From the NCBI GenBank assembly GCA_020891255.1, contig BQFW01000010.1, positions 1,736,001 to 1,800,000 of the forward strand: a stretch of DNA of 64,000 bases. Reading direction: 5' to 3'. Every line of letters begins with the position of its first letter. Within the stretch, counting starts at the first letter, position 1. Positions 1 through 10,724 of this stretch are shown piece after piece. Both the position numbers and the translations under genes were made by a program. The DNA comes from Entomortierella parvispora E1425 (lineage: Eukaryota > Fungi > Mortierellomycota). The notes beneath the pieces are model-generated. The model saw only the letters and a program-made list of their open reading frames with translations, was not told the origin of the DNA and made no database searches.

Positions 1-474
1 TAGTGACAATTGATACAAAACAAGGCTCGGTTGTAGTAGGAAACCAGGGAGCGGAGATAGAGACCGTGTTCCAGGAACCAGGGACAGGTCTGCTAATGAT
101 CCGACCATGGGGATCGTCTAATTTAGCTATGGTAATTGCGGGCTTGGATGCTCAAGGATTGGAGATGGCCTCAAGACTCTTTCCTAAACGAACTGGAATT
201 TTGGTGCCTGACTGGAGTAAGGTTTTTTCTTCGCTATTGTTGCTGTTCACATGTCTTTCAAGGTGATATTCCTGCTAACATACAATCGAACAGTCGTCGC
301 AGGTCCGGAGATGCCGTGGAAAGGGGCTGGAGGAGTCTTGGCTGCCGGGTGAGTATATATTGGACTTTGGCGCGCTATGTGCTCATACATTCTGAAGATA
401 TTCTCAACTAACACGGATTTCTCGGTAGATATTGGGGAAACAAGTGGGAGTATCTTCCGTCGATGTCTGCCTGA
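1..474 (+). CDS. 3' end of a conserved fungal secreted protein (probable alpha/beta-hydrolase family, ARB_06907-like); gene starts before the window
   Basis: Splicing GT-AG introns 217-293 and 349-428 gives ...GLEMASRLFPKRTGILVPDW-IVAGPEMPWKGAGGVLAAG-YWGNKWEYLPSMSA* (TGA 472-474). This resembles a conserved fungal C-terminus (RLFPxRTGxxxPD...WKGAxG). Family name is from memory. Confidence 0.55.
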
Positions 475-1193
475 GCGTAAATGGCGCGCACATGTTAATC
501 TCCACCGAGGCCATGTTTATCCAGCTGCTGCAAATAAAGAAGCCAAGGTTGCACCAACGGTTATTTTTGCAATGGGGAGCCGTGGAACTCAAGGAAAAAC
601 AAGCAAAGATGCTCACTCTCCCTTCTGTGCGACCCAAGCAAAGGGAGGCTGGCACACCACCCACCCAACGGACGATGTCAGGGCGTTTGTGTCCGACATT
701 GTGCGCAAATGACTGGAGGGTGGATGGGGGATGACAAGGGGGGGAAAACAGAGGGATGGAGGAACAATAATGATGAAGATAAAGCACGGCACGAGTTCAC
801 CGTTCAAAACTTTTTTCCAGGCCCTTTCCTCTCCCCCTTTCTTTCTCTCTCTCTCTCTCTCTCCTTTCAGGCACAACCTTCTTTCTCCACCTCCCCACAG
901 TCGCGCAGGCCGCACTTCACTAACGAACCCCTCACTTCCTTCATCTCATCTTGGCTGAATCAACAATCTCCATTCCTTCATCTCTTTCTCTCCTTTCATT
1001 CCTCGTTCATCAAGGTAAAATAAAGAAGGGAGACCTTTCGGGGCTCCCCGACGTTAAAATTGACGCGTGAATCGGATTTCGACATAGGGTTTCTTCTCCA
1101 CAGCGGAACAGACCACCTTTCGTCTGCTTCCTGGTCTCATGCTCTCCCTCTCCCTCTCTCCCTCCCCTCTCCTCTCCTCTCCATAGCATCATC

Positions 1194-2132
1194 ATGAAGT
1201 CCTTCCAATCCATCGCCATCCTCGCCACCTTGTCGGGCCTCCAGTTGTTGAGCGGCTCTCAAGCTCAGGCTCCTTACTGGAACGCCGTTTCCAATGCAGT
1301 CTCCTCCTCCGCAGGAGCTGCCCCCTCCTCCCAGCCGGCCACCTCAGCCCCCGCCTCGGCCACCACCACAGGTGGAGTTGTGACCCCAAGCCCAGCTTCT
1401 TTCATCAACACGGCCGGTCTTCGCGTCAACTCTCCCTTTGACGGCATGCAGATCAGCCAGAATGCCTTCTTGACCATCTCGGCTAGCCTGCAAAGCGGTC
1501 AGGCCATTGGTGAGTCTTTTTTCTTTTGTTGCGTGTTTCTTTCTCTGTTGCTCTACAATATTCTTACTAAAGAGTACAAACTAAATTGCCTTCCTTCACC
1601 TTCACCTGCTTTTCTTTTGAATTGTGTTTACCTGGTGAAAAGGCTCTGCCTTGATCACGGTCGCTCAATCCGATGGCTCCCATAACACCACCATCGTCAG
1701 CCTCCCCTCCACCAACACTATGGCCTTGGCCGAGACTTGGAATGTCAATTCCACCCTCTACCCGGTCGGTACCTACTTGGTAAGGACAAAACGATACTTA
1801 CTTTTTCCGTTTCTAGCCTTTGCCCCATGATTATAAATCCCCCCTATGTTGCGACCAATGTCCAACGGGTGCTAAAATATGTGGGATCACCCCCTACTTT
1901 CTGGGCATAGATGAACATGATTGTCACCCCCAACTTGACGACCCCACAGCCTGTGGAGCCCGGTCCCTCCATCTATTACTGGCAAGCTCACATCAAGGTC
2001 CAGGTTCCTCCTTCCCCCGTCGCCCAACCTAACGGGGCCTCGTCTTTCTTGAGCGGCTCAAGCTTCAGCAACACGATGATGGCTACCGTTGCTGCTAGTG
2101 CTCTGGTCCTGGGATCTGCGCTGTTGCTTTAA
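1194..2132 (+). CDS. Secreted Ser/Thr/Ala-rich, probably GPI-anchored cell-surface protein (3 exons)
   Basis: Signal peptide MKSFQSIAILATLSGLQLLSGSQA, a S/T/A/P-rich linker and a hydrophobic C-terminus (VAASALVLGSALLL*). Exons 1194-1509, 1643-1779 and 1911-2132 join in frame through GT-AG introns. Confidence 0.8.
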
Positions 2133-2445: not shown

Positions 2446-4816
<2,371 letters not shown>

Positions 4817-5323
4817 GGTCGGAAATCCACTTGGGATGGATGTGATGGATGGGGGATGGGGATGGAAGGAGAGGAGAGAAGAGAGAAGGGGAGACTGGAG
4901 GCGAAAATAATGCGGGAGTCTCGCTCAGGGCAGTCCTGTGTGTGTTTTGTGTGTGTGTTTTGTGCTGTTTTGTGCGGTGTGCAAATACAGAGGGTCGGTG
5001 GCTGTACACCCTTAAGGCGCGTGTCGACGTCACCCTTTTTTTTTTTTTTTTGGCTTTTTCCGCGTACTCGTTTCTCGCGTCGTACATGTATGTATGTTTT
5101 GTAAAAAAGCGTGACTGACAACATTGGACCATCCATCAGACATCCCACTCACATTCCACTCCCTGCTGCTCTCCATCATATCTGCCTCTGTCTCTCTATT
5201 CTTCTCTATTCTCGTCACCTCACACTCTTATTCTGGCCTAGATTATTAAAGGTAATGTAGCATTGAGACGCTCAAACGCGTCCAATGACGTTTCCGACGA
5301 TTGGTCTCAGCGAGATTGTTGTT

Positions 5324-5645
5324 CCTAGCGTGCCTGAGGGGGTGGAACACCCAGCATTTCTGCTGCGTGTTCATACGGATGTCACCTTTCAGCCACTGTC
5401 CAGAAACCCTCTGCATCTGGTTATGCTCATCGTTGCTCATCTGATGCCCCTCAGGTGCAGGCAGAGAGGGGAACATACCTTTTTTTATTGCTCCTAGCGT
5501 GCTTGAGAGGGTGGAACACGCACAGAAATGCTGCGTGTTCATACGGGTGTCACCTTTCAGCCACGGGCCAGAACCCCTCTGCATCTGGCAATGCTCATTG
5601 TTGCTCATCTGATGCCTCTCAAGTGCTGGCAGGGAGGGGAGCGTT
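5324..5645. repeat. Two tandem ~169-bp copies of a foldback element (candidate structured ncRNA or small DNA element)
   Basis: Copies begin CCTAGC at 5324 and 5493. Each has 12-bp terminal inverted arms (5330-5341/5447-5458 and 5499-5510/5615-5626) and two internal hairpins (GAACAC/GTGTTC, CCAGA/TCTGG). Confidence 0.9.
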
Positions 5646-5735
5646 TTCTATTCAATCCGATATTCAATTCGATATTCTGCCAATGTAAATATATTGGAAC
5701 TTGACAGCTAACAACGTGATAAATATACGACTAGG

Positions 5736-8276
5736 ATGAGGTCGTTCAAAGATTTCATTTACGAAGACACGCATGCGCATGTTTCTTTTGACGCGATGTA
5801 TGCCTGCTACATGGCTTATCTCGGTCGTGAGATTCGAAGTGGAAGGAAGTCAGTCAAGCCCAGGATCGATGAGTGTTACAAGATTTACAAGCACATATAG
5901 GCCCAAGGAACAACGAGTCAAGCGCAGGGTTGTGCCACCAAAATTGTTCGCACCGCCATTGACCAGCATACTCATGGTATGATTCGAATTCCTCAAAAAA
6001 AAAAAAGAAAAAAAAAAGAAAGGGGGACTACTCTAACCACTGTGCTCTGTTTTGACTATAATAGATACAATTAACACGCTGGCCGGAAACGAAGATGGCG
6101 ACTCTGTTCAAACTGTGGTACAATGTAGGCTGCGTCAATGATTATCACATGGTACACCGTTCACTGTGTAGCGATACTGAACATGGAGTCAGCGTCGCCT
6201 TCAATTTTCTTAGCACTCGGTATCTCGAATTCGGCCACGACTGCTGCTTGGACAAGCTCGTCTAACAGAACTACGACCAGCACGACGGCCGGCTCCACTG
6301 ACACAACTCAAACCGGATTCTCCAGCAAAAGATCAGATGAAATCCCTGGCGACGACAATCTTCCCATAGGAAACCGTACATTCCAAGGACATGTCTGGTA
6401 TCAGCACGGTGTTAACAATTAGAATGGTCTCTCACAATCGTATATTTTCTTTATAACATTGGACTTAGGAACTTTCCTAACTTCGCTGGAGAAATCTATG
6501 ACCTTCTCAAGATCGTCCCCCAGTACGTATTCTTAATAAGTTATGAGGAAGCATCTTGGTATCTATAGCCACCAGCACCGCAATAACACCACGTTACATT
6601 AGCCAAAAGGAAGAATGCATTCCAGACCCGACCAGAAGATCATGAAGAAGATGTGACTAAAAAGAAGCCCCACGCGAAGATGACACCAAGAGTTCATGTA
6701 TGATTATTTGATACAACCATCGATGCATCCCAGTCGTCATATGTACCACGAACGGAGCAGTCCACTTGATATGTAGCTCAAGATCAATGTTAACATAATA
6801 CTGATACCCGTCCTTTCCTATGACCAGTCCAAGCCCTCGGCCGCCTCTAGGAAGCCGCTGGCCCAGTCTCATAGCGAGAGCGAGGAGGAAGAGTACGAGG
6901 ACGAAGAGGACATTACTGAAGAGCTCGCCATGGTCGCTAGCTGCACCCCATTTGCTCATTTGGTGTCAATACTCTACTCAAAGGTAAGGTGTGTCATCTA
7001 TGAGTCCGCACGATCAGATACTTTGATGACTTACACCTCAACTCTCTCTGTAGTATGGCTACACGCTTCCTTCAGGACTCGATCCTCATGTCTCTTTCCC
7101 AACGGATACCACAAAATATCTCTACGACTTTGCCAAAAATGCCTTGGACAATTGGCATACCTGCAGCAAGATTGATCAAAAGAACTGTCTGTATGGCGTC
7201 GAATCTGTCTGTTGCGCCCTAATGAGTTCAGTGGCCCATGCTAAATTTTGGTTTCATTCATCTTTTTAGCGTCGCTCTGAGTGGGATTGTTAATTCCATG
7301 GATCCACATTTCTCCACCTCATCCGAGGTGGTGAGCCTGTGCCTTGACAAGAATTTTTTTACTGTGTCCCCGCAGCAGAAGGCGATCTTTCGTCAACTGA
7401 AGCGCAAATTGGGACTTGGAACTATGAAAGAGCTCCGAGCACTACGACGCCACTGTTCGCATCGCCGCAATGAATTGGAGGAGAGTTACGACAATGATGG
7501 TTGGACAACAGACGAAGAAGACGACAAGAAAGAGGAATTCAAAATAATGCAAATGATGGAGTTCATGTACGTAGCCTGATCTGCTTGCTTATCAACCCGT
7601 CAATATTCTATGTCCGCGATGATTAACCTCTCTTTCCTTCTATTTCAATCATAGCTGCGAAGAGATTATCTCGAGGGAGCGTATCTCAAAAACTTCCGAA
7701 CATGAGGATGTCTTTGTGTGGAGAGGTCTGGCCAGAATTCTTTATGAACATGATCTGGTAGTTCGTGTGGGAGAACTTGGATCATCATCAACACGAGAAG
7801 ATAGGACAGTGGTCGAGAAGGAGTTCGGTAAAACTGATTCGAATGTGCGAGGCCGTAAGATTGATATCTTACACCAGCTTTGTGTACAAGGCAGCAACAA
7901 ACCAGTGGAGATGGTGGCCTGAGAGGCCAAATCCGAATCGACTAGAGGAGATGCTCTACAAATTCAATTGAGAAAAAACATAAGGATCAACGCCTCGATC
8001 ATGAATCAGTTGTCGGGGTATATGGAACGGGATTTTCCCCGGTCTTCGCCGATGGTGCTGGACATTGTAGGATCTAGGGCATTGGTCTACATGGTTCGAA
8101 AGATGGAAGCCGGGATATTTGGCGTTGGCGCGGTTGCTGATCAGATGGTTGAGTTGCCCATGAACACGGATGAGATTGCCGGATTTCTCGATGGCGGAAG
8201 TTTGACTGCACTGCTGAGAGTCGGGGTAAGTTTCAAGGGTATATGGTCGAACTTCCAGTTGAAACGTTCATCTTGA
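5736..8276 (+). pseudogene. Decayed multi-exon gene with a C-terminal PD-(D/E)xK-like nuclease domain, of the kind expanded in Mucoromycota
   Basis: The 3' exons read ...VRVGELGSSSTREDR...GRKIDIL...EMVA*EAK...QLRKNIRINA, a D...ExK arrangement. There are in-frame stops at 5898-5900 (TAG) and 7920-7922 (TGA) and apparent frame breaks at 6.1-7.2 kb. GT-AG introns are still recognisable. Confidence 0.6.
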
Positions 8277-8965
8277 AGCTCTGTATTTACTTCTCTTTTT
8301 TTTTTTTTTTTTTGAACAATAGCTGCACAACTCTGACTTTGCCGACATGCTCAAAGAAGGATACCGAAAGGCAAAGAACCGAGAAATTCTACTGAAAATG
8401 ACAGGGGGAGCAAGTACTAGGAAGGAGGGGCCGCCTATCATCTTCACACCTAAAAAGAAGCAGCAGAGGCGGAGCAGCAAGTAATCAGACAATGAGGACC
8501 GACCCGGTGGGAAGGCCCTTTTCAACAATAAAATAAATAAAAAAAGTGGGTAGCTTTCTGAGCTGTTCCTTTCTATCGTCGCTCAATCACCTAGGACAAT
8601 TGTCAGCGAGCAGAAACTAGATTCGGCGAAGGGAACCTCTTCTACCTATTGAAGGGACCATTCCTGGACAGTTGGAAGTAGATAATATTGCTGTCATTGC
8701 TGTGGGAGGGCCAAGTTCAGATATTCTATAATCGACTGATCCTCTCTTGCTGTACGCGACTTGAGCATCCAAGCGTGGCACGGATGTCCAATGTCACCCC
8801 CTTGTCGCCCCTCTCCTCATATGATGCTCCACTCCTAATTTTCCGCATCCTCGGCTTGTTGCCTGAACATTTTTTATCTACTTCCTTCGCATTGCTTCTC
8901 CTATTCTTCTTCCTCTACTTCCTCTACTTCCTATTTAGCCCCTCTTTTCTTAACTTCAGCCAACC

Positions 8966-10724
8966 ATGTCCATTCTCGATACTGCCGCACCCGTTTCTCC
9001 CACAGCGACCTCAGTGAACACTGGGGCCAAGAAGCAGCAACGCATTTATGTCAAAAAGCCAAACCCCGAAGACAAGAAAAGGGCCTTGAACGAGATCGAG
9101 GTCAGAATCGCAGTGCTTCGACCTCAACTGGTAAACAGCCCGAGCAAAAAGAGAGTCCTCTCCCTTTTTTTTTTTTTTTTTCTGACAAACTTTTCTCATG
9201 TTTAGGATGCTGTTCGTGATGCAATTGCATCTATTGGCGACAAGAAAGAGGCGGATGCAAGAGCGCCACTTCGCAAGAAGCTCGCAGAACTGCGAGACCT
9301 TCAAACGACGCAAAAGAAATCCAAGAAAGTAAAGCTGGATGAACTCAGTACCTTGAACGCTTCCTTGAAGAAGAAGGTTCGTGTTGATGGTCTTTCATGA
9401 CTCGAGATACGAGAGAAGATACCCACGTCCCATACTGAGTCTTCTCTTGAAAGTACAGATCGCAAACCTGAAGGCTCTGCAAGACAAGCTGCCTCTGAAA
9501 ACCATGGCTGCCGTTGAATCACAGATTGAGTATGTATCCAAGAACATGGAACAAGGCGAAGGATCTCACACCCCATGTCTCTGACACTGCCTTCGATTGA
9601 ATATCTAGTGCACTCGAGAAGCAAATCCAGGCTGGCAAGCTCAAGTTGGTCGAGGAGAAACGTCTTTTGAGCGAGATCTCGCTCTTGACCCGATCTAAAA
9701 AATCTGTCGAGACTGCTCAAAAGATGCAGACTCAAATCGACGAGGACAAGAAGGCAATTGCTTCTTTGAAGACAGCCTTGGACGACCCAGCCACGAAGGC
9801 TCTCAGTGATGAGTACAGCACAATTCAAGCACAGTTGGATGAGATGACAAGATCAAAGGATGAGGTCTGGAAGAAACGCAATGATCTCTACGGCGAACGC
9901 ACTCGACTCCAAAAGGCCCTCGAGACTGAGTTCCAGCTCAAGAAGTCAGTCAACGATGACTATTTTGCGGCTTTGCGAGAGCACAGCAAGTTCATTCAGG
10001 AGGAGCAAGATCGCAAGCGCGACGAAATCAAGGCAAGAAAGCAGCAAGAGTTGGAAGAGAAGTTGCTGGCCAGAGCAAGAGATGAACGTGAGGATGCAGA
10101 GATTCCTGCCTTTCAAGAAGAAATCACCATCTGCGACAATGTGTACAAGTATTTGCTGCAGTTCAGCAATGACCCCAAGCGCTCCATGGAGACATCCCAG
10201 GCAAATGCCTCCACTGAGGCGCACAGTTCAACTGTGCGCCCCGTGGACACTACCACGAATGTTCCTCGTGGTGTCATGTTGACCAAAAAGGCTGAAAAAG
10301 TCGAAGATGTTTTCTTTGTTGGTGGAAAAACCGGAAAGAAGGTGAAGGGTCCCAAGGAAAAGAAGTCAGAAGTCAGCACGCTCAAGTTCCCTCTTGCCAT
10401 TTTGGAACAACTGGTAACGTCTCTTAAGCCTTGGCGCACTCACATCGTCAGTGGAAGGGATATCTTGTTTCTAACCATTCCTTTGATCTCTAATAGTTGG
10501 AACTAAAGATTGTGGTGCCTACATCTGCTTCTGACCTGCGAAAGACGTTGGATTCTTTGGAGGAAAAGAGCAAGGATCTTAAATCTCGCCAGGCAGAAGC
10601 GACAGCCGAAAACAAGCGCAAGGCGGAAGAACGAATCGCAACGTTGACATTGACTGATGTCGACCAGATTGAGGCAGCGGTCGAGACCACTCAGATCCTG
10701 CCAGAAATCGAGGCTACCGCCTAA
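8966..10724 (+). CDS. BFR1: Bfr1-like coiled-coil mRNP/polysome-associated protein (multi-exon)
   Basis: Spliced exons give ...KKP...LQDKLPLKTMAAVESQIE...LEKQIQAGKLKLVEEKRLLSEIS...EIPAFQEEITICDNVYKYL...FFVGGKTGKK...LKFPLAILEQL..., the motif order of fungal Bfr1. Confidence 0.8.

Follow-up and report, generated by a model that had tools for sequence, protein, structure and literature searches.

The 64-kb stretch of Entomortierella parvispora DNA analyzed here, in the following termed the window, belongs to a genome described earlier (PMC8759367). Between ATP2 and a BFR1-like gene it holds a block with two copies of a repeated, foldable sequence, the units, followed by a gene of a fungal protein family, the host gene. 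The features are as follows.

2446..4816, minus strand: ATP2, F1 ATPase beta subunit, 99% identical to Podila verticillata ATP2
4919..8958: genome-specific block of about 4 kb with the RNA units and the host gene, between ATP2 and the BFR1-like gene
5252..5734, plus strand: putative 5'-UTR intron of the host gene, 483 nt, holding both units, assigned from splice-signal motifs
5323..5476, plus strand: RNA unit 1, from pairing and covariation (covariance-model match 5325-5476, 155.9 bits)
5330-5341 with 5447-5458, plus strand: P1 of unit 1
5345-5372, plus strand: P2 hairpin of unit 1
5376, plus strand: start of P3 of unit 1
5400-5404 with 5416-5420, plus strand: P4 hairpin of unit 1
5409-5414 (CTCTGC) with 5461-5466 (GCAGAG), plus strand: pseudoknot of unit 1
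5480..5486, plus strand: run of seven T after unit 1, with TTGCTCCTAG next to it at the 5' edge of unit 2
5492..5644, plus strand: RNA unit 2, folding as unit 1 (covariance-model match 5494-5644, 137.8 bits)
5649..5677, plus strand: 12-nt tandem repeat of TATTCAATCCGA, 2.4 copies
5735..5978, plus strand: host-gene exon with the conserved N-terminal domain (ATG at 5736, GT at 5979)
7695..8267, plus strand: C-terminal homology region of the host gene (P0231 residues 316-508, tblastn E 3e-8)
about 9194-10506: BFR1-like gene, less conserved than ATP2, 99% identical to an Entomortierella parvispora protein

The block itself is a peculiarity of the source genome. A related-strain contig from DNA run X6, about 83% identical in coding sequence, joins position 4918 to position 8959 with 441 other letters, and in six loci from Podila and Mortierella (L001-L006) the element is absent near ATP2, the gap between ATP2 and its neighbor being 600-850 bp. 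In the source genome the block is single-copy, with a depth in X1 that is flat at 74. As the stretch from about 4919 to 8958 is specific to this genome, ATP2 is a neighbor by accident. A sequence-only reading of the locus had presented the repeats as lying upstream of ATP2; this link is incidental, with ATP2 on the opposite strand and the Podila and Mortierella ATP2 loci lacking the element. Note that homopolymer runs of T or A (16-27 nt) are found in the block and at its edges, at 5036-5051, 5995-6021, 8296-8313 and 9165-9181, and that assembler contigs break at these runs. The pair of ATP2 and the BFR1-like gene occurs twice per genome, on different contigs and with diverged neighbors, in M. 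alpina (L005/L006) as well as in E. parvispora (P0121/P0146), which suggests an old block duplication in Mortierellaceae.

The two units lie head to tail with a period of 168 nt, as reported by Tandem Repeats Finder (1.9 copies, 87% matches, score 504 at 5319-5640), show 90% column identity in a MAFFT alignment and are the only two copies in the 64-kb window. They had been described from the letters as tandem foldback elements of about 130 nt, and the individual pairings listed at that time are all borne out. The closing stem is formed by GTGCCTGAGGGG (5330-5341) and CCCCTCAGGTGC (5447-5458) in unit 1 and by GTGCTTGAGAGG and CCTCTCAAGTGC in unit 2, and the two double changes between these stems, C-G to U-A and G-C to A-U, fall in columns 12/132 and 17/127. 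The tandem U.G/G.U wobbles are found in both copies and are invariant in all 14 full-length distinct units, while the inner stems GAACAC/GTGTTC and CCAGA/TCTGG, the unpaired core ACCTTTCAGCCAC and the change of GGATG/CATCT to GGGTG/CATCT, an A-U pair becoming G.U, are likewise present. What had to be revised were length and shape: the element is indeed folded, but the conserved unit spans about 150 nt, including a 3' tail that forms a pseudoknot, and its architecture is a three-way junction rather than a simple foldback.

One detail sets the two copies apart. The distal 16 nt of P2 in unit 2 (5514-5540) are the reverse complement of their counterpart in unit 1 (5345-5372). All other species share the orientation of unit 1, and unit 2 is the inverted one, the result of a DNA-level hairpin flip by which the stem was kept. 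The run of seven T behind unit 1 and the adjoining TTGCTCCTAG can be read as a pyrimidine tract with an AG, a possible alternative 3' splice site, or else a Pol III terminator-like run. Downstream of unit 2, the short tandem of TATTCAATCCGA resembles TTCAATCCGTGG, the 5' start of the unit type in L012 and L019, and is by this likeness probably the remnant of a third unit; degenerate third units are also present in L011, L027 and L037.

The same fold emerged from RNAalifold on seven units and from a model-based alignment, A10, that comprises 17 units, 16 of them distinct. It consists of a three-way junction in which P1 is a closing helix of 12 bp, P2 a hairpin of about 10 bp and P3, with internal loops and a three-pair segment, is followed by the hairpin P4, whose loop forms a pseudoknot with the 3' tail. 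The junction strands AUA and AUG are invariant. In A10, 96.0% of the cells are paired, and 15 of 39 pairs have changed on both sides, against 6.4±1.7 in shuffled alignments (0 of 500) and at most 3 in slid controls, so that the larger alignment yielded the further covariation by which the sequence-only reading had proposed to judge selection on structure. Counting the pseudoknot, the covarying pairs number 17. P1 covaries at 7 of its 12 pairs and the base of P2 at four of five, and the P3 pair 67/117 is A-U in eight units and G-C in six. The pseudoknot is formed by the P4 loop, CUCUG(C), and the 3' tail, (G)CAGAG, both of them invariant and complementary to each other; in Podila epigama (L040) CUUCG and CGAAG take the place of CUCUG and CAGAG, amounting to two compensatory pairs, and in E. 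chlamydospora and in unit 2 of the window, where the tail reads CAGGG, the pairing is kept through a G.U pair. Since it pairs with the P4 loop, the 3' tail belongs to the folded RNA.

The strand is established by the wobble pairs. In the seven-unit alignment A4 there are 37 G.U cells versus 2 A.C cells, and pairing amounts to 96.3% when the plus strand is read, versus 83.5% for the minus strand. The G.U pairs thus identify the window plus strand, which is the sense strand of the host gene, as the one that folds. Together with the covariation, this supports the earlier suggestion of selection on a plus-strand secondary structure. The other form in which that suggestion had been cast, a folded single-stranded DNA element, is disfavored by the same excess of G.U over A.C, by the absence of terminal inverted repeats and target-site duplications at the ends of the units and by the gene-linked distribution described below. 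Thermodynamic stability contributes less: the z-score of the minimum free energy is about -2.7 for the two window units and between -0.5 and +0.65 for the relatives, so that it stands out for the window units only and the argument is built on covariation. GUGGCUG in the 5' strand could alternatively pair with CAGCCAC in the core; this pairing is perfect only in L012 and L019 and shows no covariation. Between lineages the units are 67-80% identical, with invariant blocks of 10-25 nt, and their indels break every reading frame; a coding function was dismissed, as the frames differ between units and indel lengths are not divisible by three. AUGCU and GAUGCC, invariant within the units, would constitute upstream AUGs. 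The two repeats are thus copies of an undescribed, conserved RNA domain of about 150 nt that folds on the plus strand.

As evidenced by the covariance model, this domain occurs 17 times, at 11 loci that represent at least nine Mortierellaceae lineages, and is conserved across at least five genera, with nothing else detected in the approximately 450 kb searched; the search of the window, 40 loci and bacterial controls gave no matches besides these units. A pattern scan of metagenomes returned 20 matches, three of which are real loci (L011, L012 and L019) and 17 chance, and the six matches from a pattern scan of bacterial and archaeal genomes are likewise chance, none being supported by the covariance model. 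Tandem pairs are not restricted to the window. They occur in L012 and L019 with a spacing of 184-187 nt, and L028 shows that the unit type of L011 is also found in tandem. In the DNA runs of three other organisms, pieces of the unit appear on several short contigs with a depth of about 4-9 times that of single-copy sequence, and the source genome has one further, diverged unit contig, 82% identical and at 2.5-fold depth. A search of the literature on Mortierella ncRNA, vault RNA or Ro found nothing relevant.

Some of these loci have features of their own. L012 carries the intact 3' end of an ATM1-like ABC transporter gene and a second copy of it with small deletions about 6.5 kb upstream; the two ATM1-like copies (132-653 and 6632-7492) enclose the RNA units and the family gene, a local segmental duplication. 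In L019, 99 nt on the plus strand (1423-1521) match positions 2833-2984 of the eukaryotic LSU rRNA model with internal deletions (34 bits, E about 1e-6). This stretch is located some 830 nt upstream of the RNA units, on the strand opposite to theirs, and may be an rRNA-derived fragment.

The gene downstream of the units turned out to be the second constant of these loci. The last unit is followed, in the window, L011 and L012, by an ORF that begins 90-120 nt further on and whose N-terminus is conserved with the pattern M.SF.EF...D.H.H..F..MY.CF..Y.GR (pairwise E 4e-9). A profile of this N-terminus, searched against 1.84 billion cluster representatives, retrieved 39 proteins of 54 to 1283 aa, labeled hypothetical proteins at NCBI, from Mortierella spp., Linnemannia elongata, Gryganskiella cystojenkinii, Entomortierella chlamydospora, E. 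beljakovae and Podila epigama. The matches lie at residues 1-57, and most of the 39 representatives are matched from their first residues. By way of these family proteins, six genomic loci were fetched, from Mortierella spp., Linnemannia elongata, Entomortierella chlamydospora and Podila epigama. In every one of the six, the gene is directly preceded by one or two units on its own strand. The distance from the end of the last unit to the ATG is 90-136 nt in five of these six loci and 687 nt in P. epigama. In total, units are situated upstream of a family-gene ATG in 10 of 11 loci, including the window, L011/L028, L012 and the six protein-derived ones. The remaining locus, L019, has two good units and no family ORF within the 258 nt of downstream sequence available. 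The host gene family is fungus-specific and restricted to Mortierellaceae. That the RNA is real and under selection, and that it represents an undescribed family tied to this one gene family of Mortierellaceae, we hold with high confidence.

Conservation among the host proteins is confined to a helical N-terminal domain, some 90 aa long, in which they are approximately 20-35% identical, and their C-terminal regions are variable. AlphaFold2 predicts the N-domain as helical with a pLDDT of about 90-98 at residues 1-60 and lower values, still helical, up to about residue 95, while the rest of the protein is of low confidence. Foldseek searches with full-length and N-domain models revealed no structural relatives of the N-domain in the PDB or the AlphaFold DB clusters, Pfam searches on 19 ORFs and proteins gave no match for the family, and protein-atlas look-ups of ORF pieces produced nothing usable. 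P0208 (283 aa) and P0227 (1283 aa) match the N-domain profile in five and six separate stretches, respectively, and the N-terminal module may thus be an internal repeat in some proteins. In two Mortierella assemblies, genes with a Crinkler domain (PF20147) adjoin the family gene, at 10-1202 (minus strand) in L035 and 264-1631 (plus strand) in L036, which hints that the family is part of a conflict- or effector-type gene neighborhood.

In the window, the host gene is recognizable by homology at both ends. The exon matches P0203 in BLASTP with residues 1-57 (E 3e-15) and 59-84 (E 2e-14), the two segments flanking an in-frame TAG at 5898-5900 where relatives have a glutamine. Toward the C-terminus, 7968-8273 matches the family (BLASTP E 3e-9), and seven family members used as tblastn queries align to 5736-5987 and 7695-8267, so that the gene runs to about 8300; a second stop, at 7923-7925, lies inside the C-terminal homology region. 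To judge from these stops, the window copy of the host gene is probably decaying and resembles a recent pseudogene. Both RNA units still pair well despite them, and at this locus the RNA-gene system as a whole may be in decay.

Splice-signal motifs frame the units. In the window these are AAAG/GTAATG at 5252 (the slash marking the putative exon boundary), a branch-like CTAAC at 5708-5712 and TAG at 5732-5734. The motif AAG/GT(A/G) is located 42-77 nt upstream of the first unit in five loci (window, L035, L036, L038 and L040), in nine of ten loci a YAG precedes the ATG by exactly one base, and CTAAC-like branch sites are found 20-45 nt upstream. For the five loci in the order given, the putative introns would measure 483, 302, 487, 486 and 880 nt. 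Indirect support comes from the L. elongata member (L038), where mapping of the intron-less P0231 (a 576-aa product from a 1731-nt ORF on a 1998-nt Logan contig) delineates six coding introns of 80-106 nt. The intron-less contig indicates that the L. elongata gene is expressed and spliced, and as its 267 non-coding bases are too few for the 447-nt span that reaches from the first unit to the ATG, the units appear to be removed from the mRNA. Furthermore, a leader that is scanned would suffer from the invariant AUGs and the very stable helices, which makes the units unsuitable as a part of the mature 5'-UTR. From these signals we consider it likely that the units lie in a 5'-UTR intron of the host gene. 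The earlier view of the repeats as a pair of undescribed noncoding RNAs therefore holds as far as a structured RNA without an Rfam match is concerned, but probably not in the sense of free-standing genes, as they are tied to a downstream gene family and to an apparent 5'-UTR intron.

In most lineages the unit begins right after a pyrimidine run and CUAG, which from its sequence could plausibly serve as an alternative 3' splice site. The CUAG is missing in L012, L019 and L038, so that alternative 3' splice sites would not be a universal mechanism. We also noted that AC(C/U)UUU, conserved in the core of every unit (5383-5389 in unit 1), is complementary over 5-6 bp to the putative 5' splice site AAAG/GU (5248-5253), with the U variant pairing through G.U. 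This complementarity could reflect a U1-like decoy that masks the site, or chance.

Comparison with known RNAs started from Rfam 15. No match overlaps a unit at E<=10 in window positions 4500-6500, and nothing in the whole window reaches the gathering score. In L011, L019 and L028 the units are overlapped by only two matches, both at chance level and on the opposite strand, SNORA26 (18.9 bits versus a gathering score of 40, E 5.9) and NPPA-AS1_3 (17.5 versus 55, E 1.1). This agrees with the by-eye dismissal of known RNA classes in the sequence-only reading, and the novelty that an Rfam hit would have removed stands. ARAGORN detected no tRNA-like gene, and there is no conserved GGTTCGANNCC-like B box in the 17-unit alignment; with no conserved A or B boxes and no tRNA-like fold, a tRNA-derived SINE or type-2 Pol III gene was rejected. 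The same applies to a box C/D snoRNA. A CUGA is found 2 nt from P1, but the window units have no GAUGA-like 5' motif, and where the motif occurs it lies in P2, in a helix that covaries at four of five pairs; a GAUGA in a covarying helix does not allow for a C/D kink-turn. Hammerhead and other ribozymes have no Rfam match here, and a telomerase template was discarded for want of conservation of the AACCCU in the P4 loop. A scan for sigma-70 promoters and terminators was disregarded as irrelevant for a fungus.

Four known systems share part of the picture. The fungal TPP riboswitches of NMT1 and THI4 resemble the units in being structured junction RNAs with invariant loops, located in a leader intron of the putatively controlled gene and with upstream AUGs and alternative splice sites nearby, and eukaryotic TPP riboswitches are commonly intronic and regulate alternative splicing (Li & Breaker 2017, PMC5640933). 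The present RNA, however, does not match the TPP model, is a pseudoknotted three-way junction that often occurs in tandem and precedes genes of an orphan, non-metabolic family. It is not among the 15 fungal motifs of the same study, which did not cover Mortierella. Autoregulatory RNAs, such as those of yeast RPL30, RPL32 and RPS14 or the fungal rpl7/rps motifs (PMC5640933), also place a conserved structure in their own pre-mRNA beside splice sites, and in our case the only part of the protein conserved throughout the family is the one encoded right beside the RNA. Here the host is neither ribosomal nor a known RNA-binding protein, its N-domain has no detectable structural relative, and the RNA far exceeds the rpl/rps motifs in size and elaboration. 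Intron-encoded snoRNAs and other stable intronic RNAs are comparable in their intronic location, their 5'/3' terminal helix, the presence of one or two units per intron and an RNA that is better conserved than the host coding sequence, but the units have neither C/D nor H/ACA boxes and their host is an orphan, fast-evolving gene and not a housekeeping one. Pol III clusters of the vault, Y or 5S kind, finally, share the size of about 150 nt, the terminal helix, the T-runs seen after many of the units, the tandem layout and the small number of copies per genome. They differ in that our units lack box A/B or a 5S-type internal promoter as well as an Rfam match and are placed between conserved splice signals upstream of a single gene family.

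From sequence and structure we tentatively favor, at just short of an even chance, that the units are cis-acting intronic RNA elements controlling splicing or expression of the host gene. The strongest competitor shares their location, in the same putative intron: the units would be released from the spliced intron as small trans-acting RNAs, protected by P1 and by bound proteins, and would work elsewhere as orphan snoRNA-like or stable intronic RNAs, with the host family mainly a carrier. We regard this as rather unlikely. It would account for units that are 67-80% identical between lineages next to host proteins of about 20-35% identity in the N-domain only, for the intact pairing in the window in spite of the stops in the host gene, for the units of L019 that have no visible host ORF and for the approximately 4-9 copies per genome. 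With the GAUGA buried in a covarying helix, no H/ACA layout and no Rfam match, however, the units do not conform to the known intron-encoded classes. Hosts of snoRNAs are usually housekeeping genes, and the exclusive tie to a fast-evolving orphan family, combined with a co-conserved N-terminal exon directly adjacent, is better explained by a role in cis.

The units might instead be independent Pol III genes, each ending at a T-run and located upstream of the family gene by chance, which we deem improbable. At least four T's start 2-11 nt past the conserved end in nine of nine units examined, against a background of 0.10 per 25-nt window, T-runs also follow the units on contigs from the X3 and X5 runs, positions 9-19 weakly resemble an A box, and size, low multi-copy number and tandem arrangement recall the vault, Y and 5S-type clusters. 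Yet there is no conserved B box, no tRNA-like region and no consistent upstream TATA, the last unit of a pair is often followed by only T4 (unit 2 of the window and of L019), and no clear T-run comes right after L035, unit 2 of L038 or L040. T-runs can also serve as intronic pyrimidine tracts, and a same-strand site 90-140 nt before the family ATG and between splice signals would have to be a coincidence. Quite improbable, too, is a selfish duplicating cassette in which units and gene move together and the fold aids propagation as RNA or single-stranded DNA. The genome-specific 4-kb block would fit this, as would the variable C-terminal regions and the unrelated neighborhoods of family members, next to ATP2, ATM1-like, Crinkler-domain, BAG and NifU genes, but the source genome has a single copy of the block, neither terminal repeats nor target-site duplications were detected, the host gene is expressed and has ordinary spliceosomal introns, and the loops are invariant across genera with G.U pairs kept at fixed places. 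A MITE, a foldback DNA or a chance palindrome within a local duplication, to which the 12-bp inverted repeat at the unit flanks and the tandem duplication could be attributed, is very hard to reconcile with the data and highly improbable. Conservation reaches past the inverted repeat asymmetrically, by 7 nt at the 5' end and by about 18 nt at the 3' end. The 3' tail has its pairing partner in an internal loop, and compensatory changes are seen in four helices and the pseudoknot. Dispersed copies with target-site duplications had been named beforehand as the sign of a MITE; the copies are gene-linked instead, 10 of 11 loci sharing the downstream gene, and target-site duplications are absent.

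In the favored cis-acting reading, the folded domain would act on its own pre-mRNA, and its reader would be either a small ligand or a protein, perhaps the N-terminal domain of the family itself. One state would lead to removal of the whole intron and to a translatable mRNA; in the other, unit-bearing sequence with its upstream AUGs and strong structure would be retained, for example by use of the sites formed by the pyrimidine run and CUAG. Fungal TPP-riboswitch introns and the autoregulatory introns of ribosomal-protein genes follow the same principle. Transcription of the units within the pre-mRNA, the intron as such and the regulatory effect are what we infer here. Among the hallmarks of a riboswitch, a covariation-supported aptamer-like structure is present, as is a position in an intron, the latter by sequence motifs only; of an autoregulatory pair, the co-conservation of RNA and N-terminal domain is found. 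As the host family has no Pfam or structural match and is non-metabolic, no plausible ligand can be named. To our knowledge, TPP is the only riboswitch class known in eukaryotes. That the unit is the sensor of a new class of eukaryotic gene-control RNA, be it the first non-TPP riboswitch or the RNA partner of the N-domain, we consider doubtful. Were it true, the sensor would be one that often works as a tandem pair, and if the partner is the N-domain, this domain would be a new RNA-binding fold that autoregulates the splicing of a fast-diversifying and possibly conflict-related family.

We know of few large, covariation-supported RNA structures in early-diverging fungi beyond rRNA, snRNA and snoRNA. 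The units offer a concrete and testable case of either intron-based gene control or a new intron-hosted RNA in Mucoromycota. The covariance model and the gene-linked search route make it possible to gather the family from all genomes of Mortierellaceae. The RNA moreover points to an unannotated protein family whose N-terminal module is conserved and whose tails vary; this protein family may relate to the Crinkler-type conflict genes found adjacent to it.
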